Positions 9,805 through 56,450 of a stretch of DNA of 64,000 nt are shown here, piece after piece. The position numbers and the translations under genes are program-made. The stretch spans positions 1,116,001 through 1,180,000 of the forward strand of contig JAUPSS010000001.1 of the NCBI GenBank assembly GCA_040285825.1, given 5' to 3'. Below the pieces are notes generated by a model. That model was not told the DNA's origin. It saw nothing but the letters and a program-made list of their open reading frames with translations, and ran no database searches. The stretch is from Eukaryota sp. TZLM1-RC. Its lineage: Eukaryota > Protista > Metamonada: BaSk clade. The number at the start of each line of letters is the position of its first letter. The stretch's first letter is position 1.

Positions 9805-10913
9805 TCGGGTTGCACAAAAAACGTAATCAGCTTCAGAATACATAAATGTAACGGATACGTTACGTCACGTTACAATTACGGATACGTAACAGATTTTGCA
9901 TTTCTATCCACTACACTTTCCCACTACAACTCACATGTCCACTCCTTCAACACCTACAAGAAGATAGTTGACACTCAAAGGAGTGTTCTACGAGGTGAAA
10001 CACATACAAATCCTCTCTTTGCATCGCATATCAACATTCTCAAACCTCTCTCTCCTACCTCTCCTGGACAAAGTAGTCCCCGTTATCCTAAAGTGATTTG
10101 TTGTCATTGCGATCATACTTTTAGTGGTTCTTGTGGTTTAGGAATATTATTTGAAATGGAAGGCCCAGCAGACATCAAAATTGAGAAAAACATGTGATGA
10201 AGTCGAGAAGACTATCGGAGACAATCAATTGTGATCAAATATTGAAATGGCTTTGAAGTTGTGTTCACCGGTTCATGAGCTAATCAACTTCGTCAACAGT
10301 GATAGTGAATGTATGAGTCAAGTTTACCCAAAGTCTGTGGGTATTTTGACAGTCATTGAAAAAGAAGATTTTGGGTTACTTAATCAGTTTTGAAACGAGA
10401 TTAGGACTCATTTTGTTGCCCGTTGGGAAAAATACGCAAGTGACCTTTATCTATGTTGCTTTGTCCTTGACCCACGAAATTTAGAGACGGGATACACTGA
10501 TGAGGTAGTTCAAGGGCTTTATCGAGTTTTGGAGAAGCTATTAAGTCAATCTGCCCAGTTAGATGCTTGTTTGGAGTTTCAACAATATTCCAACAAACTG
10601 AGGAACAGACTCAGTCATCAAAGAGCAAACGATCTAGTTTATGTTCATAGAAATATTCGCTTGTTGAGAAAGATGAAAGAAAAAGAATTTTGTCCACAGT
10701 ATATGATTGATGGTGAGCTACAGTCAGAATATTGAGTTTAGCTGTAACAAAGCCTTGTACTTATAGATTTATTCTCATAAAGTTTGGTTTAATTGTACAT
10801 GAATGTCATACTGTATTCGAGGTTAAATTCTGTGCCCAGAATTGAAGCAATGTGGTTGTTACGGCTGGATCTCAGAATACGTATTAGTTACGGATAGGTA
10901 TCGTGCAACCCTA
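9805..10913 (+). mobile_element. Non-autonomous hAT DNA transposon
   Basis: TIRs TCGGGTTGCAC / GTGCAACCCTA (1 mismatch); 8-bp TSD GTCTCAAG at 9797-9804 and 10914-10921; subterminal (T)ACGGATA repeats; hAT dimerization-type peptide KLRNRLSHQRANDLVYVHRNIRL and FVLDPR. Confidence 0.85.
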
Positions 10914-11321
10914 GTCTCAAGTCTGGTCTGTATCATTGTGTGGTCCTAGCACCAATTCAGCCACCAAACACACAGATAATAATGCTCAGACTTGTAAGAT
11001 GAAAGAAAAAGAATTTTGTCCACAGTATATGATTGATGGTGAGCTACAGTCAGAATATTGAGTTTAGCTGTAACAAAGCCTTGTACTTATAGATTTATTC
11101 TCATAAAGTTTGGTTTAATTGTACATGAATGTCATACTGTATTCGAGGTTAAATTCTGTGCCCAGAATTGAAGCAATGTGGTTGTTACGGCTGGATCTCA
11201 GAATACGTATTAGTTACGGATAGGTATCGTGCAACCCTAGTCTCAAGTCTGGTCTGTATCATTGTGTGGTCCTAGCACCAATTCAGCCACCAAACACACA
11301 GATAATAATGCTCAGACTTGT
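10670..11321 (+). repeat. Tandem duplication of 326 bp covering the hAT right end, TSD and flank
   Basis: 10670-10995 is repeated at 10996-11321 with no difference seen by eye. Confidence 0.9.
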
Positions 11322-14699: not shown

Positions 14700-15390
14700 A
14701 ATGATTAATTTATTGAATTTGCACACTTGATTAAATTAAATCATAACTAATGGGACGACTATCATTAAACCAAGATTTCCTCTACAAAATCTTGATTTGC
14801 TTGCTGTCTAGCTAAAGCTTCTCTAATTCGATTGAAAAACCGCGGTAATCTATTAATAATGGCAAATTGAATCCGTGAACGCCATAAAAAAATATCAAAT
14901 CTTTTCATTGTTTTTTCTTTCACCATTTTTTGGAAGTCATCCAAAAAAGTTTCTGCTTCAACTGATAATCTTCCATTTATCGAAAATGGGAAAGCAATAA
15001 AAACCAGCTGTGTATTTCTATCGATATTTGCATCTTCAATTTCTTTATCATATTTTCTATGTTTTTCTTTTGCTTTAAAATCCAGAGCAGCCACAGGATT
15101 AAGTTTTCTTCTGTGAACCAAAGTATCGTTTGCAACATTACATGAGACAAAGTCAACAATAGCTTCAGAATTATCAATCCAATCACAGTATACATCACCT
15201 CTATCATCAGAACCAAAATTATTCAGAGAAAGTGTTTCTTTCAGCAGGGGCTCTTTGATACACGATATCCTTGCAGTTTGTGCCATATTGAAAACAGTGT
15301 CTCTAACAGCATCATGTAATGAAGAACGATAAGTTATCAATTTAGAGCAATTTAGAGCATGGCGCAAAGTGAGTTGAGGTGAATTCGATT
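14700..15390 (-). mobile_element. CRE-clade non-LTR retrotransposon 3' fragment (RLE domain), second subfamily
   Basis: ORF 14765-15367: RHALNC...SLHDAVRD...KEPLL...DRGDV...IVDF...KAKEKHRKY...FIAFPFSINGRL; homologous copy at 55780-56450. Confidence 0.8.
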
Positions 15391-24701: not shown

Positions 24702-25744
24702 GCAAAAACAAGAAGAAATGTTTGACCATCCGAATTTATGACTGTAGCCACCAACAACACAGCAAGATATTGGGTCTCGATTTGGCAGCCATCCAACCCC
24801 AACACAGGTTTTACATGCTAAAACCCTTTAATTGAAGTCTCAAGTGCAAAGAAGCATTTGTCAAGATGTCGTTTCGCGTCAAAGATGAAAAAGGCTGCGC
24901 TTCCTTCCATTTTTTTTCATTTATTAGAGCAAAATATGCTAATAAAAGTGTATAAGATGATTCTTTGTCGCCAAATACCTAGTGTTGTGCAGGCTGAATA
25001 GTTCTTGCTGCAGAAGTATCATTATTGATAACGGAACTTTTCCGTGCCAAGTACCTCAGGGAAAGTGGTGCCTCAACCTTCGTCCACATCTGAAGAAAAT
25101 ACTTGATGGTTCTGTACAGATTAACCCTTTTTTTATTTATTTAATTTATTTATTTTATTTATTTTATTTTGCTAATAATTTAGAAATATTTTTATATCTA
25201 AATATATGTAAATATTTACTATCCACTGTAGCTTTTCACCACAAAATGTACTCACGTGTCCTTTTTGTGGATATCGATTCATTTGAAGACAAATTTAAAC
25301 TTTAAGTAAACAACAGTTACATCCAGACAGCATTCACCAATTTTGGAACTCTCCCAAACAAATTCACTTTCTCAAACACAATTAACTCACGGACCCTCTC
25401 CCATTTCTACAACCCTTTGTGTCACATAGAACTGGTAGCAAACAAGTCTTGTGCCCGCTCGTACTTGATGTTATGGTTGATCACAAGTACCTCGGCTTTG
25501 AATGATGCAAAAAACATCAGTCAGTATATCAGAATAAGAATAAAATGGGTGTTCAAATTACTAGAATTAAGTTGAGATTGCAATTACGTATGCAAGCAAA
25601 ACATTATAGAAAACAAAATTAAGATAAAACTCAACAACACTATAATTTAAGTCTCTTGCTCTGCAGGAATCCAATCTCTTATTTCAGTAATGATGTTCTC
25701 GGTAAACATCTACAATCTGCCGTGTGCAATGTACGAACACTTAA

Positions 25745-27225
25745 TTCTTGTTGTGTAAGAACTTAAGCTCAACATTCGTATAAGTGAAACAAGTGAATAC
25801 AGGCACTGTTTCCTGATACATTTCCTCAGTAAAAGCAGTAATTTCGGATTCAAGTTGCAAAATACAGATTTTTTCACAATTTTGCCAAACAACCAATAAT
25901 TGGAACAAAAATGTGAAAGACTATGCTGAAATGTTTCAGTGGAAAGAAAATTGCTTCTATCAATTTTATATTCTCCAGTTGTTTCCCTAAAAGTGTGTTC
26001 AGTTCCTCGGTCAAAGAACAAATGATAGCATCCATAAGGAGTTGGTGTATAATCAACTTCAAACAGTTGAAAACTGAATGATTAATGATTAATGATTAAT
26101 GAGTCGTTTATGTATTTATGGGACTCTAACTCAAGAGTACTACTCTCAATATTTTGTCGAGACTCTGAAATATGAGAATAAACGATATTTTAATTTTATT
26201 TTATATTTTAATTTAGATATTTTAATTTAAACGAAATTTACTTGAAATATCTCTCTTTCTTAAGATTAAGATCAAATGAATCAATGCAACATATCTAATG
26301 ATACAGTAAATAATGTCACAACAAATAATAAATTATTTTGAACAAACAAATAGTTATTGACTAAAATGAAAAACAAATATTCTTTGAAAAAATCATGAAA
26401 ATCAAACTAAAGCAATAGAAAATAAATCAGGCTATGAGCAATGATGAACCACAATGAATGATACCTATATTGGAGAAAAGAATAACTGGAACAACTACGT
26501 AAACTCAAAGTAGCAAAGAAAACACAGAAAAACAAAGAAAACATCACAAATTCTATATAGAACAAACAATAAATAAAACAAAAATGACAGGAAAACAGTA
26601 AATGAAATAATATAAGAAAGGAAAATAATCAACAGGAAAAGTAGAACAAAACCAAAAATTATATAAACTAAATTAGAAGATTAAACAACTCCAACCCGAA
26701 CCCTAATATAATCTTATTACACCTTATTCAGGATAGGGTGATGGTGTAATAACAACTTTGATTGTTCTTTCATGGCTTGTGACCATTCGACTTTACTTGC
26801 AAATGACGTGAAGAATAGAGAAACATAAATTGAACTCGATCTCGTTCTGATTGAGACAGCTGTGTCCATAGATGTGCAAGAAACGGAACGATTATTGAAG
26901 GAATCAGAAGAGAAGTGGAGTTTGTCTATATGGAAAGGTGAATAAAGAAGACGAAACATATGAACAGAAAAAGAAAGTCATGGCAATATGTAGGGGTATT
27001 TCCAACAATGACATACGATCATTCTGATTTGTAGGGGATGTATAGCTGGTGTATAGAGATGACTAAATGAGAAATTCTGCTCAAGAGAAATTTACCATCC
27101 TCTGCAGAAAACTACATCACAACCTTCAAACAATGCAATACTGACTTTGATGAGACCGACTGTAGTAATCAAGATGATGTACTACCAATGCACTTTAGTC
27201 CTTTGATCACTCCAATGACATGTGG
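25745..27225. repeat. ~1.5 kb dispersed repeat, copy 1 (copy 2 at 53088-54585)
   Basis: Near-identical by eye over the whole length; the ORF track shows the same short peptides at both loci; short diverged piece also near 13625-13725. Confidence 0.9.
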
Positions 27226-30363: not shown

Positions 30364-31959
30364 GTGAATATTTACAGCGATAATAATCTGTTTAATTCAC
30401 GTCGAGGTGTTTTAATTGCTCCTTTTGTTGATTTCTCTCAAGTTGAAACCTTCGCTTTTATTTATCGTGATGATGTTTTACCTAGTGCTAATGGTCATTT
30501 TAACAAGGCTGAAGATCGTAAAAGAAATAAATCAACTGGGATATTGAATGATTTAAATAAGAATCTTTACTCAAAGTTTGTTCCTTTTGCCTTTTCGATT
30601 TTTGGCAACATTGGACAGTTCGCCTTGGGTTTTATCAATGATTTTGGTAATTTGTGTCGTTCAAGTGGTAAGAAGTTTGCAGGGAATTTATGGAAGAATC
30701 GTATCATTTTCGCTTTGTACAGAAGTGTTCCCAAATAATTTTGTTTTGATTTAATTTGATTCTGCGTAGAAAATGAATATTTTTGTTAAAATTACAGTAA
30801 CAATTTCTCACAAAAGGAAATTTTTGCGAATAACATGCAAAATTAAGATCCACAACAACACAAAATACCCAATCTTAAGAATCACGCTCATTGATCAAGC
30901 ACGATGCAGACCAAAGAAAGCAAAAGAAAAGAAAAACATGCCAGAACTGCACTAGTTTATTATTATCTCAGCAACCAAGGTCATTTGGTCTGCACTTAAC
31001 AAATGAAGCTTGAAAACAAAACATGTAGTTGAGATTAGAGTTGTGTCCAAGTGGTCTTTTGGGCAATTCTGTTTGTATTTGTAATGAAAAACATACTACC
31101 AATTTCCGTCATATTGTTAGTTGTAAGAAATTCCTTTAATATCGGTCAGTTCTTCATAATGCCGTTCGTGATGTGACATATGAGATGTTCAAGTGTTTAA
31201 ATTTTAGGTGCAAAGTAGAAACGTTGTTGAAGCATTATAGCGATAATAATCTGTTGAATTCACGTCGAGGTGTTCTAATTGCTCCTTTTGTGGATTCCTC
31301 TCAAGTTGTTGTTGATTTTACTAGAGTTGATCCCTTTGCTTTTATTTATCGTGATGATGTTTTTTTTTAGTGAAGACCGAAAAAGAGGTAAATAGACTGC
31401 AATATTAAATGATTTAAATAAGAATCTTTACTCGAAGTTTTCGTTTATTCTTTTTGCCTTTTCGATCTTTGGCAACATTCGACAGTTCGCCTTGAATTTT
31501 ATCAATGATTTTGATAATTTATGTCGTTCAAGTGGTAACAATTTTGCAGGAAATTTATGAAAGAATCGTATCATTTTCGCTTTGTATAGAAGTGTTCCCA
31601 AATAATTTTGTTTCATGTGTGTTTTAGTTTGTTTTGTTTTGATTTGATTCTGCGTAGAAAATCAATATTGTTGTTAAAATCACAGTAACAATTTCTCACA
31701 AAAGGAAATTTTTGCGAATAACATGCAAAATCAAGATCCACCAAAACCTAAAATGCCCAATCTTCAGAATCACCCTCATTGATCAAGCACCATGCAATCA
31801 GACCAAAAAAACAAAAGACAAAAAGAAAAGAAAAGAAAAGAAAAACAAGCCAGAAGTGCACTAGTTTTATATCTCAGCAACCAAGGCTATTTGGTCTTCA
31901 CTTAACAAATGAAGCATGGAAACAAAACATGCCGTTGAGATTGGGGCTGTATCCAAGTG
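30364..31959 (+). mobile_element. Head-to-tail degenerate RLE 3' fragments with A-rich linkers
   Basis: Two copies of the RLE end plus 3' segment, each followed by a (CAAAA/GAAAA)n tract and GCCAGAA(C/G)TGCAC. Confidence 0.85.
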
Positions 31960-32812
31960 TTTTTCCTGGGCAATTCTGTTTGTATTTGTAATGAAAAACC
32001 TACTACCAATTTCCGTCATATTGTTAGTTGTAAGAAATTCCTTCAATATCGGTCAGTTCTTCATAATGCCGTTCGTGGTGTGACATATGAGATGTTCAAG
32101 TGTTACAATTTGAGGTGCAAAGTAGAACCGTTGTTGAAGCATTATAGCAATAATAATCTGTTTAATTCACGTCGAGGTGATTTAATTGTTCCTTTTGTGG
32201 ATTCCTCTCAAGTTGTTGTTGATTTTGCTACAGTTGATCCCTTTGCTTTTGTTTATCGCGATGATGTTTTACCTAGTGCTAATGGTCATTTAAACAAGGC
32301 TGAAGATCGTAACAGAGATTAATATACTGGGATATTAAATGATTTAAATAAGAATCTTTACTCAAAGTTTTCGTTTGTTCTCTTTGCCTTTTCGATTTTT
32401 GTCAACATTGGACAGTTCGCCTTGGATTTTAATCAATTTGGTAATTTATGTCGTTTAGGTGGTAAGAAGTTTGCAGGGAATTTATGTAAGAATCGTATAA
32501 TTTTCGCAGGGAATTTATGTAAGAATCGTATAATTTTCGCTTTGTACAGAAGTGTTCCCGAGTACTTGAGTTTAATGATGTCCAAGCTATATAAGGATTC
32601 ATCAAGAGTTGGCGTGGAGAATTTTGTTTCTTATGTGTTTCAGTTTGTTTTGTTATGTTTTGATTCCGCGTAGAAAATCAATACTGTGAAAATTTCCGTA
32701 CCAATTTCTCACAAAAGGAAATTTTTGCGAATATCATGCAAAATCAAGATCCACAAAATCCTAAAATGCCCAATCTTCAGAATCACCCTCATTGATCAAG
32801 CACCATGCAGTC

Positions 32813-32946
32813 GGACCCGGAAAGTGGGAAAGGAAATGCTGGCTCCCACTTTGGGGTCCCCTTTTGCCAGAAGTGCACAGATGGGATTCGAACCATGTTG
32901 CCAAAGCAGAGAACGAAGTGCAAACCCACTGGACTACGATGTTGGC
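32813..32946 (-). ncRNA. tRNA-like Pol III element (A box + B box) followed by a GC-rich hairpin; SINE head or tRNA pseudogene; one copy in each of the 5 units
   Basis: Minus strand TAGTCCAGTGG (32926-32936) and GGTTCGAATCC (32884-32894), 31 nt apart; hairpin arms 32813-32829 and 32844-32859; other B boxes at 34280, 35676, 37732, 39821; cloverleaf stems are imperfect. Confidence 0.6.
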
Positions 32947-33150
32947 AAATGATGTTGTTGATTTTTCTAGTTTATATTGGGTTTTGATTTGTATTGATGT
33001 TGGACGATTTTGTAGTTGGTTTTGTGTTGATAATAAAAGTGATTGAAATGTGTTTATTAAACGGAAATTTGAAGAGAAGGACGATTAGATGCTACTTGTC
33101 GAAGTTTGGATTTAGTTGGATTGCTAATGTCGTTGGACTCAAGATCCAAT

Positions 33151-33355
33151 TCAGTCAGACTCAAGATCCAATTCAGTCAGAGTGGAATTGCTCTCCAGAG
33201 CACGGGCGAGAGCACTAGCGCCTTCAGAGGTAATGTTGTTGGACCGAAGATACAATTCAGTCAGAGTGGAATTGCTCTCCAGAGCACGGGCGAGAGCACT
33301 AGCGCCTTCAGAGGTAATGTTGTTGGACCGAAGATACAATGTAGTCAGAGTGGAG
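33151..33355 (-). pseudogene. LRR cassette 1 (2 full modules + terminal module)
   Basis: Matches the 3' end of 40088-42913; no kinase N-terminus. Confidence 0.9.
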
Positions 33356-34546
33356 TTTTTCCTGGGCAATTCTGTTTGTATTTGTAATGAAAAACCTACT
33401 ACCAATTTCCGTCATATTGTTAGTTGTAAGAAATTCCTTCAATATCGGTCAGTTCTTCATAATGCCGTTCGTGGTGTGACATATGAGATGTTCAAGTGTT
33501 ACAATTTGAGGTGCAAAGTAGAACCGTTGTTGAAGCATTATATCAATAATAATCTGTTTAATTCACGTCGAGGTGATTTAATTGTTCCTTTTGTGGATTC
33601 CTCTCAAGTTGTTGTTGATTTTGCTACAGTTGATCCCTTTGCTTTTGTTTATCGCGATGATGTTTTACCTAGTGCTAATGGTCATTTAAACAAGGCTGAA
33701 GATCGTAACAGAGATTAATATACTGGGATATTAAATGATTTAAATAAGAATCTTTACTCAAAGTTTTCGTTTGTTCTCTTTGCCTTTTCGATTTTTGTCA
33801 ACATTGGACAGTTCGCCTTGGATTTTAATCAATTTGGTAATTTATGTCGTTTAGGTGGTAAGAAGTTTGCAGGGAATTTATGTAAGAATCGTATAATTTT
33901 CGCAGGGAATTTATGTAAGAATCGTATAATTTTCGCTTTGTACAGAAGTGTTCCCGAGTACTTGAGTTTAATGATGTCCAAGCTATATAAGGATTCATCA
34001 AGAGTTGGCGTGGAGAATTTTGTTTCTTATGTGTTTCAGTTTGTTTTGTTATGTTTTGATTCCGCGTAGAAAATCAATACTGTGAAAATTTCCGTACCAA
34101 TTTCTCACAAAAGGAAATTTTTGCGAATATCATGCAAAATCAAGATCCACAAAATCCTAAAATGCCCAATCTTCAGAATCACCCTCATTGATCAAGCACC
34201 ATGCAGTCGGACCCGGAAAGTGGGAAAGGAAATGCTGGCTCCCACTTTGGGGTCCCCTTTTGCCAGAAGTGCACAGATGGGATTCGAACCATGTTGCCAA
34301 AGCAGAGAACGAAGTGCAAACCCACTGGACTACGATGTTGGCAAATGATGTTGTTGATTTTTCTAGTTTATATTGGGTTTTGATTTGTATTGATGTTGGA
34401 CGATTTTGTAGTTGGTTTTGTGTTGATAATAAAAGTGATTGAAATGTGTTTATTAAACGGAAATTTGAAGAGAAGGACGATTAGATGCTACTTGTCGAAG
34501 TTTGGATTTAGTTGGATTGCTAATGTCGTTGGACTCAAGATCCAAT

Positions 34547-34751
34547 TCAGTCAGACTCAAGATCCAATTCAGTCAGAGTGGAATTGCTCTCCAGAGCACG
34601 GGCGAGAGCACTAGCGCCTTCAGAGGTAATGTTGTTGGACCGAAGATACAATTCAGTCAGAGTGGAATTGCTCTCCAGAGCACGGGCGAGAGCACTAGCG
34701 CCTTCAGAGGTAATGTTGTTGGACCGAAGATACAATGTAGTCAGAGTGGAG
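34547..34751 (-). pseudogene. LRR cassette 2 (2 full modules + terminal module)
   Basis: Same as cassette 1. Confidence 0.9.
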
Positions 34752-35942
34752 TTTTTCCTGGGCAATTCTGTTTGTATTTGTAATGAAAAACCTACTACCA
34801 ATTTCCGTCATATTGTTAGTTGTAAGAAATTCCTTCAATATCGGTCAGTTCTTCATAATGCCGTTCGTGGTGTGACATATGAGATGTTCAAGTGTTACAA
34901 TTTGAGGTGCAAAGTAGAACCGTTGTTGAAGCATTATATCAATAATAATCTGTTTAATTCACGTCGAGGTGATTTAATTGTTCCTTTTGTGGATTCCTCT
35001 CAAGTTGTTGTTGATTTTGCTACAGTTGATCCCTTTGCTTTTGTTTATCGCGATGATGTTTTACCTAGTGCTAATGGTCATTTAAACAAGGCTGAAGATC
35101 GTAACAGAGATTAATATACTGGGATATTAAATGATTTAAATAAGAATCTTTTCTCAAAGTTTTCGTTTGTTCTCTTTGCCTTTTCGATTTTTGTCAACAT
35201 TGGACAGTTCGCCTTGGATTTTAATTAATTTGGTAATTTATGTCGTTTAGGTGGTAAGAAGTTTGCAGGGAATTTATGTAAGAATCGTATAATTTTCGCA
35301 GGGAATTTATGTAAGAATCGTATAATTTTCGCTTTGTACAGAAGTGTTCCCGAGTACTTGAGTTTAATGATGTCCAAGCTATATAAGGATTCATCAAGAG
35401 TTGGCGTGGAGAATTTTGTTTCTTATGTGTTTCAGTTTGTTTTGTTATGTTTTTGATTCCGCGTAGAAAATCAATACTGTGAAAATTTCCGTACCAATTT
35501 CTCACAAAAGGAAATTTTTGCGAATATCATGCAAAATCAAGATCCACAAAATCCTAAAATGCCCAATCTTCAGAATCACCCTCATTGATCAAGCACCATG
35601 CAGTCGGACCCGGAAAGTGGGAAAGGAAATGCTGGCTCCCACTTTGGGGTCCCCTTTACCAGAAGTGCACAGATGGGATTCGAACCATGTTGCCAAAGCA
35701 GAGAACGAAGTGCAAACCCACTGGACTACGATGTTGGCAAATGATGCTGTTGATTTTTCTAGTTTATATTGGGTTTTGATTTGTATTGATGTTGGACGAT
35801 TTTGTAGTTGGTTTTGTGTTGATAATAAAAGTGACTGAAATTTGTTTATTAAACGGAAATTTGAAGAGAAGGACGATTAGATGCTACTTGTCGAAGTTTG
35901 GATTTAGTTGGATTGCTAATGTCGTTGGACTCAAGATCCAAT

Positions 35943-36840
35943 TCAGTCAGACTCAAGATCCAATTCAGTCAGAGTGGAATTGCTCTCCAGAGCACGGGCG
36001 AGAGCACTAGCGCCTTCAGAGGTAATGTTGTTGGACCGAAGATACAATTCAGTCAGAGTGGAATTGCTCTCCAGAGCACGGGCGAGAGCACTAGCGCCTT
36101 CAGAGGTAATGTTGTTGGACCGAAGATACAATGTAGTCAGAGTGGAATTTCTCTCCAGAGCACGAGCGAGAGCACTAGCGCCTTCAGAGGTAATGTTGTT
36201 GTCCCCAAGACTCAATCTAGTCAGAGTGGAATTGCTCTCCAGAGCACGGGCGAGAGCACTAGCGCCTTCAGAGGTAATTTTGTTGAACCCAAGATACAAT
36301 TCAGTCAGAGTGGAATTACTCTCCAGAGCACGGGCGAGAGCACTAGCGCCTTCATCAGCAATTTGGTTTTCCGTGATAGCAAAAGGGCCATTTCCAAGAT
36401 CTAATGTAGTCAGAGTGGAATTACTCTCCAGAGCACGGGCAAGAGCACTAGCGCCTTCAGAGGTAATGTTGTTGTGCTCAAGATTCAATTCAGTCAGAGT
36501 GGAATTGCTCTCCAGAGCACGGGCGAGGGCACTAGTGCCTTCATCGGTAATGTCGTTGAACTGAAGATCCAATGTAGTCAGAGTGGAATTGCTCTCCAGA
36601 GCACGGGCGAGATCACTAGCGCCTTCAGAGGTAATTGTGCTGCCCCCAAGAAACAATGTAGTCAGAGAGGAATTGCTCTCCAGAGCACGGGCGAGAGCAC
36701 TAGCGCCTTCAGAGGTAATGTTGTTGGACCGAAGATACAATTCAGTCAGAGTGGAATTGCTCTCCAGAGCACGGGCGAGAGCACTAGCGCCTTCAGAGGT
36801 AATGTTGTTGGACCGAAGATACAATGTAGTCAGAGTGGAG
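35943..36840 (-). pseudogene. LRR cassette 3 (10 full modules + terminal module, reshuffled order)
   Basis: Open frame of 28-aa RI/NLRC3-type repeats, fused upstream to antisense RLE sequence. Confidence 0.9.
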
Positions 36841-37998
36841 TTTTTCCTGGGCAATTCTGTTTGTATTTGTAATGAAAAACCTACTACCAATTTCCGTCAT
36901 ATTGTTAGTTGTAAGAAATTCCTTCAATATCGGTCAGTTCTTCATAATGCCGTTCGTGGTGTGACATATGAGATGTTCAAGTGTTACAATTTGAGGTGCA
37001 AAGTAGAACCGTTGTTGAAGCATTATATCAATAATAATCTGTTTAATTCACGTCGAGGTGATTTAATTGTTCCTTTTGTGGATTCCTCTCAAGTTGTTGT
37101 TGATTTTGCTACAGTTGATCCCTTTGCTTTTGTTTATCGCGATGATGTTTTACCTAGTGCTAATGGTCATTTAAACAAGGCTGAAGATCGTAACAGAGAT
37201 TAATATACTGGGATATTAAATGATTTAAATAAGAATCTTTACTCAAAGTTTTCGTTTGTTCTCTTTGCCTTTTCGATTTTTGTCAACATTGGACAGTTCG
37301 CCTTGGATTTTAATTAATTTGGTAATTTATGTCGTTTAGGTGGTAAGAAGTTTGCAGGGAATTTATGTAAGAATCGTATAATTTTCGCTTTGTACAGAAG
37401 TGTTCCCGAGTACTTGAGTTTAATGATGTCCAAGCTATATAAGGATTCATCAAGAGTTGGCGTGGAGAATTTTGTTTCTTATGTGTTTCAGTTTGTTTTG
37501 TTATGTTTTGATTCCGCGTAGAAAATCAATACTGTGAAAATTTCCGTACCAATTTCTCACAAAAGGAAATTTTTGCGAATATCATGCAAAATCAAGATCC
37601 ACAAAATCCTAAAATGCCCAATCTTCAGAATCACCCTCATTGATCAAGCACCATGCAGTCGGACCCGGAAAGTGGGAAAGGAAATGCTGGCTCCCACTTT
37701 GGGGTCCCCTTTTGCCAGAAGTGCACAGATGGGATTCGAACCATGTTGCCAAAGCAGAGAACGAAGTGCAAACCCACTGGACTACGATGTTGGCAAATGA
37801 TGCTGTTGATTTTTCTAGTTTATATTGGGTTTTGATTTGTATTGATGTTGGACGATTTTGTAGTTGGTTTTGTGTTGATAATAAAAGTGACTGAAATGTG
37901 TTTATTAAACGGAAATTTGAAGAGAAGGACGATTAGATGCTACTTGTCGAAGTTTGGATTTAGTTGGATTGCTAATGTCGTTGGACTCAAGATCCAAT

Positions 37999-38896
37999 TC
38001 AGTCAGACTCAAGATCCAATTCAGTCAGAGTGGAATTGCTCTCCAGAGCACGGGCGAGAGCACTAGCGCCTTCAGAGGTAATGTTGTTGGACCGAAGATA
38101 CAATTCAGTCAGAGTGGAATTGCTCTCCAGAGCACGGGCGAGAGCACTAGCGCCTTCAGAGGTAATGTTGTTGGACCGAAGATACAATGTAGTCAGAGTG
38201 GAATTTCTCTCCAGAGCACGAGCGAGAGCACTAGCGCCTTCAGAGGTAATGTTGTTGTCCCCAAGACTCAATCTAGTCAGAGTGGAATTGCTCTCCAGAG
38301 CACGGGCGAGAGCACTAGCGCCTTCAGAGGTAATTTTGTTGAACCCAAGATACAATTCAGTCAGAGTGGAATTACTCTCCAGAGCACGGGCGAGAGCACT
38401 AGCGCCTTCATCAGCAATTTGGTTTTCCGTGATAGCAAAAGGGCCATTTCCAAGATCTAATGTAGTCAGAGTGGAATTACTCTCCAGAGCACGGGCAAGA
38501 GCACTAGCGCCTTCAGAGGTAATGTTGTTGTGCTCAAGATTCAATTCAGTCAGAGTGGAATTGCTCTCCAGAGCACGGGCGAGGGCACTAGTGCCTTCAT
38601 CGGTAATGTCGTTGAACTGAAGATCCAATGTAGTCAGAGTGGAATTGCTCTCCAGAGCACGGGCGAGATCACTAGCGCCTTCAGAGGTAATTGTGCTGCC
38701 CCCAAGAAACAATGTAGTCAGAGAGGAATTGCTCTCCAGAGCACGGGCGAGAGCACTAGCGCCTTCAGAGGTAATGTTGTTGGACCGAAGATACAATTCA
38801 GTCAGAGTGGAATTGCTCTCCAGAGCACGGGCGAGAGCACTAGCGCCTTCAGAGGTAATGTTGTTGGACCGAAGATACAATGTAGTCAGAGTGGAG
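37999..38896 (-). pseudogene. LRR cassette 4 (10 full modules + terminal module, reshuffled order)
   Basis: Same translation as cassette 3. Confidence 0.9.
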
Positions 38897-40087
38897 TTTT
38901 TCCTGGGCAATTCTGTTTGTATTTGTAATGAAAAACCTACTACCAATTTCCGTCATATTGTTAGTTGTAAGAAATTCCTTCAATATCGGTCAGTTCTTCA
39001 TAATGCCGTTCGTGGTGTGACATATGAGATGTTCAAGTGTTACAATTTGAGGTGCAAAGTAGAACCGTTGTTGAAGCATTATATCAATAACAATCTGTTT
39101 AATTCACGTCGAGGTGATTTAATTGTTCCTTTTGTGGATTCCTCTCAAGTTGTTGTTGATTTTGCTACAGTTGATCCCTTTGCTTTTGTTTATCGCGATG
39201 ATGTTTTACCTAGTGCTAATGGTCATTTAAACAAGGCTGAAGATCGTAACAGAGATTAATATACTGGGATATTAAATGATTTAAATAAGAATCTTTACTC
39301 AAAGTTTTCGTTTGTTCTCTTTGCCTTTTCGATTTTTGTCAACATTGGACAGTTCGCCTTGGATTTTAATTAATTTGGTAATTTATGTCGTTTAGGTGGT
39401 AAGAAGTTTGCAGGGAATTTATGTAAGAATCGTATAATTTTCGCAGGGAATTTATGTAAGAATCGTATAATTTTCGCTTTGTACAGAAGTGTTCCCGAGT
39501 ACTTGAGTTTAATGATGTCCAAGCTATATAAGGATTCATCAAGAGTTGGCGTGGAGAATTTTGTTTCTTATGTGTTTCAGTTTGTTTTGTTATGTTTTGA
39601 TTCCGCGTAGAAAATCAATACTGTGAAAATTTCCGTACCAATTTCTCACAAAAGGAAATTTTTGCGAATATCATGCAAAATCAAGATCCACAAAATCCTA
39701 AAATGCCCAATCTTCAGAATCACCCTCATTGATCAAGTACCATGCAGTCGGACCCAGAAAGTGGGAAAGGAAATGCTGGCTCCCACTTTGGGGTCCCCTT
39801 TTGCCAGAAGTGCACAGATGGGATTCGAACCATGTTGCCAAAGCAGAGAACGAAGTGCAAACCCACTGGACTACGATGTTGGCAAATGATGCTGTTGATT
39901 TTTCTAGTTTATATTGGGTTTTGATTTGTATTGATGTTGGACGATTTTGTAGTTGGTTTTGTGTTGATAATAAAAGTGACTGAAATGTGTTTATTAAACG
40001 GAAATTTGAAGAGAAGGACGATTAGATGCTACTTGTCGAAGTTTGGATTTAGTTGGATTGCTAATGTCGTTGGACTCAAGATCCAAT

Positions 40088-42913
40088 TCAGTCAGACTCA
40101 AGATCCAATTCAGTCAGAGTGGAATTGCTCTCCAGAGCACGGGCGAGAGCACTAGCGCCTTCAGAGGTAATGTTGTTGGACCGAAGATACAATTCAGTCA
40201 GAGTGGAATTGCTCTCCAGAGCACGGGCGAGAGCACTAGCGCCTTCAGAGGTAATGTTGTTGGACCGAAGATACAATGTAGTCAGAGTGGAATTGCTCTC
40301 CAGAGCACGGGCGAGAGCACTAGCGCCTTCAGAGGTAATTTTGTTGAACCCAAGATCCAATGTAGTCAGAGTGGAATTTCTCTCCAGAGCACGAGCGAGA
40401 GCACTAGCGCCTTCAGAGGTAATGTTGTTGTCCCCAAGACTCAATCTAGTCAGAGTGGAATTGCTCTCCAGAGCACGGGCGAGAGCACTAGCGCCTTCAG
40501 AGGTAATTTTGTTGAACCCAAGATACAATTCAGTCAGAGTGGAATTACTCTCCAGAGCACGGGCGAGAGCACTAGCGCCTTCATCAGCAATTTGGTTTTC
40601 CGTGATAGCAAAAGGGCCATTTCCAAGATCTAATGTAGTCAGAGTGGAATTACTCTCCAGAGCACGGGCAAGAGCACTAGCGCCTTCAGAGGTAATGTTG
40701 TTGTGCTCAAGATTCAATTCAGTCAGAGTGGAATTGCTCTCCAGAGCACGGGCGAGGGCACTAGTGCCTTCATCGGTAATGTCGTTGAACTGAAGATCCA
40801 ATGTAGTCAGAGTGGAATTGCTCTCCAGAGCACGGGCGAGATCACTAGCGCCTTCAGAGGTAATTGTGCTGCCCCCAAGAAACAATGTAGTCAGAGAGGA
40901 ATTGTTCTCCAGAGCACGGGCGAGAGCACTAGCACCTTCATCGGTAATGTTGTTGCCCCAAAGATTCAATTCAGTCAGAGAGGAATTGCTCTCCAGAGCA
41001 CGGGCGAGAGCACTAGCGCCTTCATCGGTAATGTTATTGTCCCCAAGATTCAATTCAGTCAGAGAGGAATTGCTCTCCAGAGCACGGGCGAGAGCACTAG
41101 CGCCTTCATCGGTAATGTTGTTGTACCGAAGATACAATTCAGTCAGAGTGGAATTGCTCTCCAGAGCACGGGCGAGAGCATTAGCGCCTTCAGAGATAAA
41201 GTTGTCCCCAAGATTCAATTCAGTCAGAGAGGAATTGCTCTCCAGAGCACGGGCGAGAGCACTAGCGCCTTCAGAGGTAATGTTGTTGTAGTGAAGATAT
41301 AATTCAGTCAGAGAGGAATTGCTCTCCAGAGCACGGGCGAGAGCACTAGCGCCTTCAGAGGTAATGTTGTTGTAGTGAAGATACAATTCAGTCAGAGTGG
41401 AATTGCTCTCCAGAGCACGGGCGAGGGCACCAGTGCCTTCATCGGTAATGTTGTTGAACTGAAGATCCAATTCAGTGATGGAACCATCAACCAAACCCTC
41501 AACACCCTTCTTCACCTTATCCCCCAATCCATTCCAATATACATTCGACTTGATTTCTTCCAAAATTTCTTCCTTAGATACAGAATTAGTTCTACTGAGT
41601 AGAATATTTTGCCTTTTCAATTCATCAATGGTAGATCTAAGGTTGGCATTTTCTGTATCTTTCTCAGCAATACTAGCCTTGCTGGCATTAAAAGCTTCTT
41701 CCATAGTGGCAATTCTAGCATCACGTTCTTCCAAAATGTGACTGAGGTGTTGATTGGAAGCATTGATACCGGCCCTTTCTTCTTCCAACCGCCCAATTCT
41801 GGAATCCCGTTCAGTCAAATCGTTGATGAGTTGTTGATTGGAAGCCTCCAAATCAGCAACATTCTTTCGTAGAGACTCGATTGTAGAGTTGGCAGATTGC
41901 AGTTGCGTTTGAAAATCATTGTTAATATTAATAGGATTTTCATCACCTTCTTCAGCAAAGTCATCCAATTGATCCAAAACTAGAAGAACTTGAGCAATAC
42001 TTGGTCTGGCAGCTGGATCTGAAGAGCAACATTGGGCGATTAATTCTTTGAGAACATGGGGAACGTGTTCACCCAAAGCAAATGGTGTCTTAAAATACTT
42101 AGCTCCCATTATGGCAATCTGATCCATATTGACAAATGGCCTATAATTACAGAGTAACTCACAAAGGATGATTCCAATTGCATAGATGTCTGAGGCAAGA
42201 GACAATTTGTTCTCAAACTGCTCCAAGGCTGCATACCGTGCTGTACATGATAGATTGGTAGCCGTGGAAGTCTTGGCAACAGTCCTGGATGTTCCAAAAT
42301 CGGCTAATTTGATTTGCCCATTGACAAAAAGAATGTTTTCGGGCTTGAGATCTCCATGTGCAAGTGATTTGGAGTGCAGAAAACGGACTGCCTGGCAGAT
42401 CTTCTTGGCAAACAAGAGACTTTGTTTAGTCAATCTTGACGGCACTGACAGAGAACCTTCAGCAAGTTCCATAATTATGGCGAGTCTGTCCATTAAGCTG
42501 ACCAGACCAAAAACGCGGAGGATAAAGGGATGATCAATCTTGGCCATAATACCAATCTCTTTCCTCAGTCGTTTCTTACCTTCTTCTGTGAGAGCAACAG
42601 TCTTGGCGGCGACGTCCGAATCAAACCAAGAAGCAGCAAACACCTGGGCATATCCTCCTTGACCAATCATGTGCAAAAGTTTGACCTGATTAGAGGGAAT
42701 GTGTACACAGAGGTCCTCCTTGCAAGAAGCTTTGGCTATATCGCGCAAACTGAGGTTGACTTCCGGTGACGGCAGGATATCTTCATTGCAGATCGGACAG
42801 GATTCCACAGCATCAGAGCATACACCGCATACACTATGCCGCTGACTGCAAACAACCAGTGGCACACGAGACTCTTCGTTGAAATCCATTGAACAATGTG
42901 GACACGAGAGCAT
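40088..42913 (-). CDS. RING-finger / TKL-type protein kinase / coiled-coil / 16x RI-like LRR protein
   Basis: CPHC...C..RHSVCGVC...CPIC (RING); GQGGYAQV, AAK, HGDLKPEN, DFG, YAALE, DIYAIG (kinase); heptad region; NSTLTELxLxxNNITSEGASALARALES repeats; C-cap cut off by a 22-bp duplication. Confidence 0.92.
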   Translation of the reverse strand: MLSCPHCSMDFNEESRVPLVVCSQRHSVCGVCSDAVESCPICNEDILPSPEVNLSLRDIAKASCKEDLCVHIPSNQVKLLHMIGQGGYAQVFAASWFDSDVAAKTVALTEEGKKRLRKEIGIMAKIDHPFILRVFGLVSLMDRLAIIMELAEGSLSVPSRLTKQSLLFAKKICQAVRFLHSKSLAHGDLKPENILFVNGQIKLADFGTSRTVAKTSTATNLSCTARYAALEQFENKLSLASDIYAIGIILCELLCNYRPFVNMDQIAIMGAKYFKTPFALGEHVPHVLKELIAQCCSSDPAARPSIAQVLLVLDQLDDFAEEGDENPININNDFQTQLQSANSTIESLRKNVADLEASNQQLINDLTERDSRIGRLEEERAGINASNQHLSHILEERDARIATMEEAFNASKASIAEKDTENANLRSTIDELKRQNILLSRTNSVSKEEILEEIKSNVYWNGLGDKVKKGVEGLVDGSITELDLQFNNITDEGTGALARALESNSTLTELYLHYNNITSEGASALARALESNSSLTELYLHYNNITSEGASALARALESNSSLTELNLGDNFISEGANALARALESNSTLTELYLRYNNITDEGASALARALESNSSLTELNLGDNNITDEGASALARALESNSSLTELNLWGNNITDEGASALARALENNSSLTTLFLGGSTITSEGASDLARALESNSTLTTLDLQFNDITDEGTSALARALESNSTLTELNLEHNNITSEGASALARALESNSTLTTLDLGNGPFAITENQIADEGASALARALESNSTLTELYLGFNKITSEGASALARALESNSTLTRLSLGDNNITSEGASALARALERNSTLTTLDLGFNKITSEGASALARALESNSTLTTLYLRSNNITSEGASALARALESNSTLTELYLRSNNITSEGASALARALESNSTLTELDLESD

Positions 42914-43226
42914 TGTGAGAAAATATGATAATTACCAAAATTGCCAATGAGGATTCCCTCATGCTGATTTCTATTTCCCAATGGTCATAGGTGCCATTTC
43001 GCACAACATATTTCACATATTTGTCACGATCTATATGTGCCCCATCTAGACCACCATTTAGTACTCAGTTTTGGGCATATCGTGCTACATGAGAATTGCC
43101 ATAATGAAAATGACACTTTGAGCAAAGACTTCGTACACCTGGACCCGTGTATTACAATCCAAGACTTCCCTTCAAGCAAACCTTCGGCCAATCACGCCTT
43201 TCCACAGCTCCTCCCCGAACAATTTT

Positions 43227-44525
43227 AACACTTGAACATCTCATATGTCAAATCACGAACGGCATTATTAAGAACTGACCTATATTGGAGAAATTTCTTA
43301 CAGCTCACAATATGACGGAAATTGGTAGTATGTTTTTCATTACAAATACAAACAGAATTGCCCAAAAGACCACTTGGATACAACCCTAATCTCAACTACA
43401 TGTTTTGTTTTCAAGCTTCATTTGTTAAGTGAAGACCAAATGGCCTTGGTTGCTGAGATAATAATAAACTAGTGCAGTTCTGGCATGTTGTTCTTTTCTT
43501 TTGCTTTCTTTGGTCTGCATCGTGCTTGATCAATGAGCGTGATTCTTAAGATTGGGTATTTTGTGTTTTTGTGGATCTTGATTTTGCATGTTATTCGCAA
43601 AAATTTCCTTTTGTGAGAAATTGTTACTGTGATTTTAACAACAATATTGATTTTCTACGCAGAATCAAATCAAATCAAACTAAAGCACATAAGAAACAAA
43701 ATAATTTGGGCTTCTGTACAAAGCGAAAATGATACGATTCTTCCATAAATTCCCTGCAAAATTGTTACCACTTGAACGACACAAATTACCAAAATCATTG
43801 ATAAAATCCAAGGCGAACTGTCCAATGTTGACAAAAATCGAAAAGGCAAAAGGAACAAACGAAAACTTTGAGTAAAGATTCTTATTTCAATCATTTGATA
43901 TCCCAGTTTATTTATCTCTTTTTTGGTCTTCAGCCTTGTTAAAATGACCATTAGCACTAGGTAAAACATCATCACGATAAATAAAAGCGAAGGTTTCAAC
44001 TTGAGAGAATTCAACAAAAGGAGCAATTAAATCACCTCGACGTGAATTAAACAGCAACAATGGTTTTACTTTGCAACTAAGATTGTAACACTTGAACATC
44101 TCATATGTCACATCACGAACGGCATTATGAAGAACTGACCGATATTGAAGGAATTTCTTACAACTAACAATATGACGGAAATTGGTAGTAGGTTTTTCAT
44201 TACAAATACAAACAGAATTGCCCAAAAGACCACTTGGATACAGCCCCAATCTCAACCGCATGTTTTGTTTCCATGCTTCATTTGTTAAGTGGAGACCAAA
44301 TGGTCTTGGTTGCTGAGATAATAAACTAGTGCATTTCTGGATGTCTGATAAAAAGGAAGCAAATTATTAATCATTATTATTATTAGTCACACAAAGTCGT
44401 TTAGGCAAATCCAAGTCTTAAAAACCAATCAGAACAGACTTCTCTAAGTTCACAACAGCAAGGCAAGATGAAGATTGTAGAAAGCTCTCGAAGGTACAGC
44501 AGGCAAACTTGAAGGAAAACTCCTA
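43227..44525 (-). mobile_element. 3' end (RLE) of the CRE element continuing at 51696-53080, plus a second partial tandem copy
   Basis: MRLRLGLYPSGLLGNSVCICNEKP...HNAVRD...RRGDL; the frame VDVWN|RSFPSSLPAV continues across the Gypsy insertion. Confidence 0.85.
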
Positions 44526-51695: not shown

Positions 51696-53080
51696 CTATT
51701 CCAAACATCAACAGGTAGTTCCTGCACCATGTTTTCAAGAGAAATTAATAATGGATGTGTTTCATTCAAAGGAATATGATCAAAACGAAGTTTCCACTCA
51801 AAAAGAAAATTTTTGATACCGCCAATAAAAGCACTTTTATATAAATACTCTGCTTTTGAAAAACCAACTCCACCAATTTTATTACTAAAAATGCATGATA
51901 AGGAATTTTTGATGGACAAACTTCTACTAAATCTCCTAAGAAATATGTTCTCAAAGTATTTAATTGACGTGCAAAATCATGTGAAATTGTGGGGGATAAA
52001 GAACGAAGAAGGTGATTAATTTTTGATCCAAAGCATACATTTAGGACCGAAAACGCTAAATGTTCGTCAATTTCTAGATTTTGAATAGCAAAAAGTTGCT
52101 CTTCGATTTTCCCAAAATACCTGACAAAATCGATTTAACTTTTTCACAAGTTCCAAATTTAAAGCCAAGAAAACGAATAGCATCTTCTTCATAATCAAAG
52201 TATTTGATATATGTTTCATTAAATGCTACCCCAGCATCCTGATTACCAATAATGAAACACTTGGGCAATTTTATATCTAACACTGTTTGGACAGGATAAC
52301 GAAATGTTGTACCCGTGCGGTAGAAAAAACAAAGGGCCGATAAGTGATAAATCATCTGCATCAGCACATATATGAATGTCAAGAAAATCCAACTTAAATT
52401 TTACCAACTGATTGCAGTGCTAAGCAAAAGAAAAATGGACCCAATGGATGGACCTCTTGACGAAACAATATACTGAGAATGAAAAATTAAGTAAGAGGGT
52501 GATCCATACATCAATTTCAAATACGTCAAAAGTGGAGAATTATGTAGTTCAAGTTATTGTAAAATACTTGAGCGAAAAACCGTGTGGTAAACATTTTTAG
52601 AATCAATATTCAATGAATAATTCTCGCCTTTTTAATTGAAAAATAAATCTGTACACAACGCAGCACAAATTGTGCCATCAGAAATGCCAATTGCAAACTG
52701 ATAAGGACGAAAAATTTAATTGCGGATGACTTAAGTTTTTTAAAAGAAATAATTGCTAATAATCTCATTATGGACTCACCAACAGCAATAGGTCTGACAC
52801 CACCCCCAGGCTTACTTAGAACAACTAAACGAGATGCCATTAACGCTTGTGGTAATTTAAGGCGTCCCATGATAACACCATTAAAAAAGAAAGCTAAATC
52901 ATCCACGATTTATGTACATATGTTGACGTCCGACTTCAAATAATCATAACTAAGTCCAGAAGTCCCAGTAGAACGACCAGACGTAAGTCCTTTAATAGCT
53001 ACACTAACTTCATCAGAAGTAATAAGGTTAGCAGTGAAGAAATCACGTTTAGTATCAGAGACAATATGATTAATGGTGAA
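51696..53080 (-). mobile_element. CRE-clade non-LTR retrotransposon, RT portion (decayed)
   Basis: GRSTGTSGLSYDYLK, ASRLVVLSKPGGGVRPIAVGESIMRL, PLGPFFFC, ADD, RFLG..FG, IGGVG. Confidence 0.85.
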
Positions 53081-53087
53081 AACTTGA

Positions 53088-54585
53088 TTCTTGTTGTGTA
53101 AGAACTTAAGCTCAACATTCTTGAAAGTGAAACAAGTGAATACATGCACTGTTTCCTGATACATTTCCTCAGTAAAATCAGTAATTTCGGATTCAAGTTG
53201 CAAAATACAGATTTTTTCACAATTTTGCCAAACAACCAATAATTGGAACAAAAATGTGAAAGACTATGCTGAAATGTTTCAGTGGAAAGAAAATTGCTTC
53301 TATCAATTTTATATTCTCCAGTTGTTTCCCTAAAAGTGTGTTCAGTTCCTCGGCCAAAGAACAAATGATAGCATCCATAAGGAGTTGGTGTATAATCAAC
53401 TTCAAACAGTTGAAAACTGAATGATTAATGATTAATGATTAATGAGTCGTTTATGTATTTATGGGACTCTAACTTAAGAGTATTACTCTCAATATTTTGT
53501 CGAGACTCTGAAATATGAGAATAAACGATATTTTAATTTTATTTTATATTTTAATTTAGATATTTTAATTTAAACGAAATTTACTTGGAACATCTCTCTT
53601 TCTTAAGATTAAAATCAAATGAATCAATGCAACATATCTAATGATACAGTAAATAATGTCACAACAAATAATAAATTATTTTGAACAAACAAATAGTTAT
53701 CGACTAAAATGAAAAACAAATATTCTTTGAAAAAATCATGAAAATCATGAAAATCAAACTAAAGCAATAGAAAATAAATCAGGCAATGAGCAATGATGAA
53801 CCACAATGAATGATACCTATATTCGAGAAAAGAATAACTGAAACAACTACGTAAACTCAAAGTAGCAAAGAAAACACAGAAAAACAAAGAAAACACCACA
53901 AATTCTATATAGAACAAACAGTAAATAAAACAAAAATGACAGGAAAACAGTAAATGAAATAATATAAGAAAGGAAAATAATCAACAGGAAAAGTAGAACA
54001 AAACCAAAAATTATATAAACTAAATTAGAAGATTAAACAACTCCAACCCAAACCCTAATATAATCATATTACACCTTATTCAGGATAGGGTGATGGTGTA
54101 ATAACAACTTTGATTGTTCTTTCATGGCTTGTGACCATTCGACTTACTGGCAAATGACGTGAAGAAAAGAGAAACATAAATGGAAGTCGATCTCGTTCTG
54201 ATTGAGACAGCTGTGTCCATAGGTGTGCAAGAAACGGAATGATTGTTGAAGGATTTAGAAGAGAAGTGGAGTTTGTCTATGTGGAAAGGTGAATAAAGAA
54301 GACGAAACATATGAACAGAAAAAGAAAGTCATGGTAGGATGTAGGGATATTTTCAACAATGACATACAATCATTCTGGTTTGTAGGGGATGTATAGCTGG
54401 TGTTTAGAGATGACTAAAGATGACTAGAGATGAGAAATTCTGCTCAAGAGAAATTTACAATCCTCTGCAGAAAACTACATCACAACCTTCAAACAATGCA
54501 ATACTGACTTTGATGAGACCGACTGTAGTAATCAAGATGATGTACTACCAATGCATTTCAGTCCTTTGATCACTCCAATGACATG
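53088..54585. repeat. ~1.5 kb dispersed repeat, copy 2
   Basis: See 25745-27225. Confidence 0.9.
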
Positions 54586-55779
54586 TTTACCTCCAAGGCG
54601 ACTCACCGTTAGAACTGAGCAAGCAAAAACATTGAAAAATACATTCTCAGCACCAAGTACGTCTTCTCTTACAAATTTTCGTCATTTCAGAAATTATTTT
54701 TGAAAATTGAAATAGAAATTGCAGACATTACTTGTCTAACCTCCCTGTTCAACTGAACTTTTAGAAGTTGAATATTCGGAGGTAGTCGCAACTGATTCGC
54801 AGATGTTTCAGTTTATTATGGTTATTCAAATTGCTCCAAGTTATGTTAGTTGGAAATTGTCTCTCAAATTCTATTTATTTGTACTTAATATAAATATAGA
54901 TCACAGCCCCAAGGTTGGTACAACTATTCGAAATAGGGCTCTAGTTTTAAATTCGGTAAATATTGTGCGAAATCAGTCTAAAACTGTAAAACTGTATTCT
55001 AAAGTATTTTAATTTTTAGCCTTACCTTGCTCTTTACGGTTGAAAATTCATTAAAATAGGTCAAAATGGCTCAAGTTGCTTTGTCTCCTCTCCAAATTTT
55101 TGCTAGTTTCAATTTTCGATTATTGGTTTAGTATGATATTCTGTCACTTTCTGGTCAGCCCTTAAAAAGCGTGCAACAGTTTGATTTCAATGATATACAC
55201 ATTGTTTATTCTGTTATTAAACCTATTCTGTTTATTGGTGGAAAATGAAGAGACACAATGTACCTAAATTGATTTGATACCGAAATGACTATTGGCGAAT
55301 AGAAACAGTAAAGAGTATGCTTGTATGGACAATGAACAAATCAATAGGTGTTGTAAATGTGTACCTTAAAATGTTAAGCCCAACCAGAAAGATTGACGTA
55401 TAACAGTATTTGTCACCTTGATCCATCTTAAAAACACTACAAACGTAAAACTTGAAAAATTATTCAAACTTTGTTGAAACATCTTCTTTTTAATTAGGGT
55501 CAAGTATACATTCTTTCAACATTACAGAAACGATTTTCTGGAATGTATGAAAATGATCTTGATAATAATATTTGCAGCTTGGCTGTTTTAAATCAAAATC
55601 TTTACTCATTGTGATTGAAACAGGGTGGTTGTGAAAATAAGTCATCAGATTCTCCATTTTTTATAACCAGTGTACCACGAAGATTTGGATTGTGTGTCAT
55701 TAATGAAGCATTTGTAACAAAGACGAGGTTATATTAGAATATCCCCATTAATCAATTATTAGCAAAAGAAAAATGTATT

Positions 55780-56450
55780 TGTTCGAATTCACCTCAAGTC
55801 GCTTTGCGACATGATCTGAAATGTTTTCAAATGATAACTTATCGTTCTTCATTACATGATGTTGATAGAGACACTGTTTTTAATATGGCACAAACTGGAA
55901 GAATATTGTGTATCAAAGAGCCTCTGCTGAAGGAAACACTTTCTCTCAATATTTTTGGTTCTGATGATGGAGATGAAGTATTCTGTGATTGGATTGATAA
56001 CTTGCAAGCAATTGTTGACTCTGTCTCGGGTAATGTTGCAAATCATACTTTGGTTCACAGAGGAAAACTTAATCCTGTGAGTGCTCTTCATTTTAAAGCA
56101 AAAGAAAAACACAGAAAATATGATACAGATATTGAAAAAAGCTAATGTTGGTAGAAATACACAGCTGGTTTTTATTGCTTTCCCATTTTCGATAAACGGA
56201 AGATTATTAGTTGAAGCAGAAACTTTTCTCAATGGCTTCCAAAAAATACAATGAAAAGATTTGATAATTTTATGGCGTTCTCGGATTCAATTTGCCATTA
56301 TTAATAGATTACCTTGGTTTTTGAATCGAATAAGAGACGCTTTAGCTAGACAGCAAGTAGATCAAGATTTTGAAGACGAAATCTTGGTTCAATGATATTC
56401 GTCCCATTAGTTATGAGTTAATTTAATTAAGTGTGCATGTTCAATAAATA
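55780..56450 (+). mobile_element. CRE-clade RLE 3' fragment (same subfamily as 14700-15390)
   Basis: MRHDLKC...SSLHD.DRD...KEPLLKE...KAKEKHRKY; 3' UTR also matches. Confidence 0.82.

Follow-up and report, generated by a model that had tools for sequence, protein, structure and literature searches.

The headless LRR cassettes found downstream of a kinase-LRR gene of Skoliomonas litria are best read as the debris of recent local repair and recombination behind a probably damaged member of a family of sensor-like RING-kinase-LRR genes, and we give this reading a probability of roughly 0.8. The debris records a shuffling of repeats similar to that of the fungal HNWD genes. The first-pass annotation of the locus had favoured a modular diversification system and had kept the debris of unequal crossing-over as a fallback; the evidence supports the fallback, and the locus is very probably not a diversification system. 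TZLM1-RC is the type isolate of S. litria, a free-living anaerobic metamonad (PMC11603281). The window, i.e., the whole stretch of 64,000 nucleotides that was analysed, lies on contig 1 of its assembly (JAUPSS010000001.1, 4.04 Mb; GCA_040285825.1), which was built by ABruijn from Nanopore R9.4 reads and then polished, using Nanopolish as well as Illumina reads (10.1101/2023.05.03.539051).

The array lies behind a gene with the following features.

40088..42913, minus strand: RING-like/Ser-Thr kinase/coiled-coil/16 RI-type LRR gene, an uninterrupted ORF of 941 aa
40088..41488, minus strand: LRR array within this gene, with 16 full modules and a half 'end' module
40073..40118, minus strand: 22-bp tandem duplication that causes a frameshift and removes the C-terminal cap from the product

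The kinase, the coiled coil and the 16 full LRR modules were recovered as first described, but the RING-like motif is weak: the Cys-rich N-terminus has only a marginal match in Pfam (Sina_RING, E 0.043). The kinase domain (residues 79-310, E 2e-44) is of the non-RD type, with HGDLKPEN and DFG motifs. Kinase and LRR were matched in Pfam, NACHT and WD40 were not. The LRR array has no introns and its modules are 84 bp long, with the exceptions of module 4 (81 bp) and module 11 (105 bp); they differ at 2-16 nt per 84 bp, mostly in beta-strand codons.

Compared with its relatives, this gene is probably damaged. The C-terminal cap is kept in all 11 paralogues, whereas the product of this gene stops just before it, and 30 aa (90 nt) of the linker that the paralogues keep are missing. 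The 22-bp duplication is absent from all nine paralogue 3' regions that were checked; each of the four cassettes carries it (37984-38029, 35928-35973, 34532-34577 and 33136-33181). The sequence of the cap can still be read in another frame, and a candidate GT-AG interval of 37 nt at 40054-40090, near the size of the annotated introns (28-38 nt), would restore that frame if spliced. Splicing could thus bring the cap back, and the damage is not proven.

Downstream of the gene and on the same strand we find four headless partial copies of its LRR region, in the module orders first reported, which a comparison module by module confirmed.

31959-40294: extent of the cassette array
33151..33354, minus strand: cassette 1, modules 15,16,end
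34547..34750, minus strand: cassette 2, modules 15,16,end
35943..36839, minus strand: cassette 3, modules 15,16,8,9,10,11,12,13,15,16,end
37999..38895, minus strand: cassette 4, modules 15,16,8,9,10,11,12,13,15,16,end

The first-pass annotation had set the limits of the feature at 30388 and 44054; these positions delimit two retrotransposon remnants in inverted orientation, not the cassette array. The cassettes are not free-standing, since each belongs to a tandem unit that also includes 1.2 kb of flanking and retrotransposon sequence. The units are arranged head to tail and measure 1396, 1396, 2089 and 2056 bp; the difference of 693 bp between units of 1396 and 2089 bp does equal 7x84+105, as had been calculated. 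Only 196 bp of the short unit (1,396 bp) are LRR sequence, the other 86% being 3' flank and remnant of an RLE retrotransposon. The cassettes hold 8 of the 16 modules of the gene, no module of their own and only two new adjacencies, and their modules show no difference from the matching gene modules except for one base at the founding junction. In a self-comparison, the exact matches between copies of the array range from 171 to 1608 bp, far beyond chance, and cassettes 1 and 2 share a match of 1,608 bp. The LRR modules inside the unit make the exchanges of the array legible.

The frames of all cassettes are open, which is expected at the age of the array, yet would equally be seen in an archive that is maintained. 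The NCBI annotation predicts ORFs in these copies, with products of 307 aa and 76 aa obtained through a 34-nt GT-AG intron. Together with the open frames and the existence elsewhere of a kinase-less copy of the family (P0122), this could suggest that LRR-only genes of recent origin, decoys or competitors, are expressed from the long cassettes, starting at an ATG in the retrotransposon remnant, which is antisense to them. However, the predictions come from an AUGUSTUS-based pipeline and place both the start and the intron within transposon sequence, while the predicted products lack both caps and have an arrangement found in no paralogue. We regard such genes as very unlikely.

Three junctions define the internal structure of the array.

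38895..38896: founding blunt junction between retrotransposon and module 15, with zero overlapping bases
38725..38731, minus strand: 16/8 crossover, identity window of 7 bp, repeated at 36669-36675
38185..38205, minus strand: 13/15 join, identity window of 21 bp, repeated at 36129-36149

The founding junction is identical in all four cassettes (the other copies are at 36839/40, 34750/51 and 33354/55). The first-pass annotation had all breakpoints falling in register. This is true of the internal joins, 16/8 and 13/15, which are the only in-register breakpoints of the cassettes, but not of the blunt 5' junction of all cassettes, which has zero overlap. The 16/8 crossover has just 7 bp of exact identity, which counts against the debris reading.

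Between and beyond the cassettes lie five spacers, and repeats of the same remnant are found on both sides of the array and gene.

31959..33150: spacer S1, the original distal copy, with ancestral alleles; continues into the retrotransposon remnant
33355..34546: spacer S2, S1-type haplotype
34751..35942: spacer S3, S5-type haplotype; its private differences are partly in homopolymers
36840..37998: spacer S4, one copy of a 33-bp tandem repeat missing
38896..40087: spacer S5, 3' flank of the gene and 3' remnant of the RLE non-LTR retrotransposon
30372..31958, plus strand: older tandem array of ~860-bp units with RLE remnant and family flank, copies 82-87% alike
43221..44344, minus strand: RLE-remnant array in inverted orientation, located upstream of the gene; 92.7% identical to 30388-31203

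Judging from its sequence, the element in the spacers is a remnant of an RLE non-LTR retrotransposon, carried on the plus strand, tail-to-tail with the gene. Its translation contains a zinc knuckle and the motifs RHNAVR (RHN), RRGD (RxxD), DF and E..K..KY, and near-identical copies follow an RVT_1 domain in two other loci (L002 and L008); the remnant by itself has no match in Pfam. ARAGORN and Rfam gave no tRNA or known RNA in the spacer, where A/B-box-like words are visible. The older array at 30372-31958 is of the same kind as an array of eight units found behind a paralogue (P0023).

Over about 1.4 kb, between 1 and 7 substitutions separate the five spacers, in addition to a 33-bp indel and two indels of a single base. 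They form two haplotypes, S1/S2 and S3/S4/S5, of which the latter includes the spacer adjoining the gene (S5). At the two sites that can be polarised by the paralogues, S1/S2 carry the ancestral state and S3-S5 the derived one. Since the divergence of the spacers is at most 0.5%, against 5-10% between the flanks of paralogues, the radiation of the family must be older than the array by a factor of roughly 10-20.

The SNPs of the spacers fit a history that begins with a single duplication and continues with about four unequal exchanges. In a first step, a blunt non-homologous join would have produced a second copy of a 1,396-bp segment that runs from module 15 across the 3' flank into the RLE remnant, giving the arrangement gene-Sa-(15,16,end)-Sb; the junction is present in the sequence, from which we infer the mechanism. 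An in-register unequal crossover between module 16 of the cassette and the 7/8 boundary of the gene would then have copied the 3' half of the gene, with the spacer of the gene, into the cassette. The donor of this second step would have been without module 14, through an in-register deletion of one module, an allele lacking module 14 or a later gain of the module by the gene. In the third and fourth steps, the long unit and the short unit would have been duplicated by unequal exchanges. When replayed, this history gives the observed order of modules and the observed order of spacers (Sa,Sa,Sa,Sb,Sb); because the replay was built to match the modules, the order of the spacers is its only independent check. 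The events recorded in the array thus reconstructed appear to run from gene to cassette.

We also considered retrotransposition with a large target duplication as the origin of the unit, and rejected it. The supposedly new copy of the element is 99.5% identical to the degenerate resident copy and contains the private 33-bp duplication of the latter, all units have one truncation point in common, and the junction is without poly(A).

The copy number and the module order of the array derive from a single Nanopore assembly with Illumina polishing. Assembly and polishing could affect the copy number and the perfect identity of the units, polishing being able to homogenise repeats. A rival reading is that assembly itself produced the array, or the number of its copies, by expanding repeats or by joining two haplotypes in tandem. 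The use of ONT R9.4 reads with ABruijn and Illumina polishing (10.1101/2023.05.03.539051), the 1,608-bp match between cassettes 1 and 2 and the homopolymer-type private differences in S3 are in line with this. The Logan contigs of public DNA runs are fragmentary: they align to 35400-41300 as short pieces, none of which spans a cassette junction. Yet assemblers do not invent new junctions, and the array has three, of which two keep the codon register. Every unit can be told apart, the pattern of SNPs shared between units agrees with the polarity given by the paralogues, and similar arrays, free of LRR, are found behind two paralogues. An artefact is unlikely overall; a wrong number of cassettes is plausible, whereas their total absence is unlikely.

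The debris reading can be set against the rest of the family. Seven close paralogues, at 86-90% over the first 480 aa, came out of a word search, along with two further relatives that have a different RING-kinase head and one kinase-less copy; all lie on contig JAUPSS010000001.1. The survey took in 10 loci with 10 kb on each side, one of which also contains an eleventh gene with its downstream side beyond the sequence covered, so that the comparisons cover 11 paralogues on one contig. All ten paralogues examined have the 3' flank and the RLE remnant in common, and none of the ten has LRR sequence of this type outside genes within 10 kb downstream. Two have LRR-free tandem arrays at the corresponding downstream site, of three 1,219-bp units (P0006) and of eight units of ~889 bp (P0023), and other duplications of at least 97% identity are present in 7 of the 10 loci. 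The retrotransposon-bearing 3' flank is thus prone to tandem amplification (3 of 11 genes examined).

The modules of the family are diverse even where cassettes are absent. The genes have between 4 and 16 LRR modules, and 94 of 99 modules are distinct across 12 genes (a single module in the eleventh gene was parsed wrongly). Near-identical pairs of modules within a gene are found in 6 of the 11 paralogues, all without cassettes. These intragenic pairs and the large share of distinct modules indicate that the family diversifies and shuffles its repeats without cassettes. Its diversification, as the comparison of modules suggests, is by point change at variable codons and by intragenic gain and loss of repeats, as in the fungal HNWD NLRs. 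The kinase-less P0122 is the sole LRR-only relative in S. litria among 8000 candidates of 0.55-1.75x the query length. It was examined as a possible cassette array and rejected, since it is a paralogue that has lost its 5' part but has modules of its own and an intact cap.

Could the cassettes nevertheless be maintained as a donor stock from which programmed gene conversion feeds the expressed kinase-LRR gene, as the first reading, by analogy with VLR, vlsE and VSG, had proposed? They are adjacent, headless, in the same orientation as the gene and in open frame, two of their joins are in register, and the family is hypervariable. A single crossover between gene and cassette can give 151 module orders, of which 120 are out of reach of a single crossover between two copies of the gene and take two or three such events without cassettes; all 151 are reached by gene-by-gene crossovers in at most three. 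However, the diversity of the donors is nil, against ~90% identity for the vls cassettes (PMC11499132), and in lamprey the VLR loci hold donor cassettes by the tens to hundreds (PMC12264053). Unlike a germline VLR gene, which is incomplete, the gene here is complete. As a recipient it lacks the C-cap. The information recorded in the array flows from gene to cassette, and the array is far younger than the family. Cassettes behind paralogues, whose absence the first-pass annotation had named as one half of what would refute it, were found in 0 of 10. An archive of this kind is therefore highly improbable: as the cassettes hold no new sequence, they are very probably not an immune-style archive of diversity.

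If debris, the cassettes are passive, and further crossovers can lengthen, shorten or reorder the LRR region of the gene. With no new modules among them, the array may speed such passive reordering, but it cannot add variety to the binding face. A related reading, with a donor archive at its birth or already at work, would have the identical adjacent copies raise the rate of in-register rearrangement within clones, which selection could keep; this we think very doubtful. Were it true, a free-living metamonad would possess a simple combinatorial device for diversifying a receptor, and were the full archive true, cassette-based diversification of LRRs would extend to a free-living protist.

Among known systems, the array corresponds to local tandem duplication and unequal crossing-over beside a remnant of an RLE non-LTR retrotransposon. 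It matches this class in its blunt founding junction, its head-to-tail units, the mosaic SNP haplotypes and the in-register changes of unit length, and nothing essential differs. Borrelia vlsE/vls (PMC11499132) also has a full gene beside a contiguous run of headless partial copies, but the vls cassettes, ~90% identical to vlsE, are present in every strain and are one-way donors, whereas the Skoliomonas copies match the gene exactly, have transposon-bearing spacers between them and are specific to one locus. The lamprey VLR loci (PMC12264053) likewise have LRR modules near a receptor gene. There an incomplete germline gene is assembled, probably by means of cytidine deaminases, with donor cassettes that number in the tens to hundreds; here the gene is complete and the copies hold eight redundant module types. 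A further comparison is the LRR exon shuffling in the ROCO genes of the brown alga Ectocarpus (PMC3341825), where non-coding LRR units near candidate sensor genes were proposed as a reservoir. In these genes each LRR is an exon and the spare units lie in introns, with inverted non-coding units at 19 loci, whereas in Skoliomonas the LRR array is intron-free and the spare units lie downstream, at 1 of 11 genes examined.

By analogy, the HNWD/NWD NLRs of Podospora (het-d, het-e; PMC1805685, PMC12222747) are a closer parallel than vlsE or VLR. As in the Skoliomonas family, their sensor repeats are near-identical with few variable codons, and unequal crossing-over changes the number and order of the repeats; broken copies with intact repeats, the HNWD pseudogenes, join the exchange passively (PMC1805685, PMC12222747). 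The two differ in that HNWD proteins carry WD40 repeats on NACHT proteins and the Skoliomonas proteins RI-type LRRs on a RING-like kinase, and in that the spare repeats of Skoliomonas are adjacent, identical tandem copies of the gene's own tail, which is not so in HNWD. A function in non-self recognition has been shown for HNWD. The joins mapped to 7 and 21 bp indicate that the LRR modules of the kinase family recombine as units of 84 bp, which parallels what has been proposed for the fungal HNWD sensors.

The gene and its four headless LRR cassettes are flanked on both sides by inverted copies of an array built from the 3' remnant of an RLE non-LTR retrotransposon, and the inverted repeat is adjoined on its upstream side by an LTR-retrotransposon-like element. 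The window also contains several other repeats.

30388-31203 and 43221-44344: inverted RLE-remnant array copies, 92.7% identity
44734-50949 (-): LTR-retrotransposon-like element with RT, RNase H and integrase matches; its 1137-aa ORF has no Pfam match
25735-27223 and 53078-54586: direct repeat pair, 1.5 kb, 96%
14708-15388 and 55783-56449: inverted repeat pair, 87%
10670-11321: perfect tandem, 2x326 bp
5620-6322: older RLE remnant

At the equivalent upstream boundary (-307 bp) of three paralogue loci (L002, L004 and L006), the RLE piece lies in the opposite orientation to that in the window, so the gene locus here has undergone a local inversion-type event. Where the ~860-bp units of the older array join, there is a 12-13-bp word that occurs both in the gene flank and in the ORF of the retrotransposon (window 31850, 32867 and 44329); this word reads as the microhomology behind the creation of that array.

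The RLE 3' remnant is present in all paralogues (L002-L011), tail-to-tail with the gene and ~400-1000 bp past the stop codon, with 5' truncation at a few differing points (about 252, 295, 337 and 444 in query coordinates). Spread of the gene via retrotransposon 3' transduction could be the source of this pattern. The spacer contains, at ~39810-39880 (-), words similar to A and B boxes that recall a tRNA-derived element; they recur in every tandem unit and in the one inspected paralogue flank (L007), and ARAGORN and Rfam identified no tRNA or known RNA there.

Two modules of the gene are atypical, with no counterpart of either change among paralogue modules.

40621-40651: module 11, 7-residue insertion
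41156-41236: module 4, 1-residue deletion

One family copy, P0122, has its upstream region joined to the end of the kinase from the P0018-type head.

L011 9684-10978: P0122, coiled coil, four LRRs (modules its own) and an intact cap

In two paralogues, P0018 and P0023 (L009/L010), the coiled-coil/LRR tail is the same but the RING-kinase head is of another type, which suggests a head swap.
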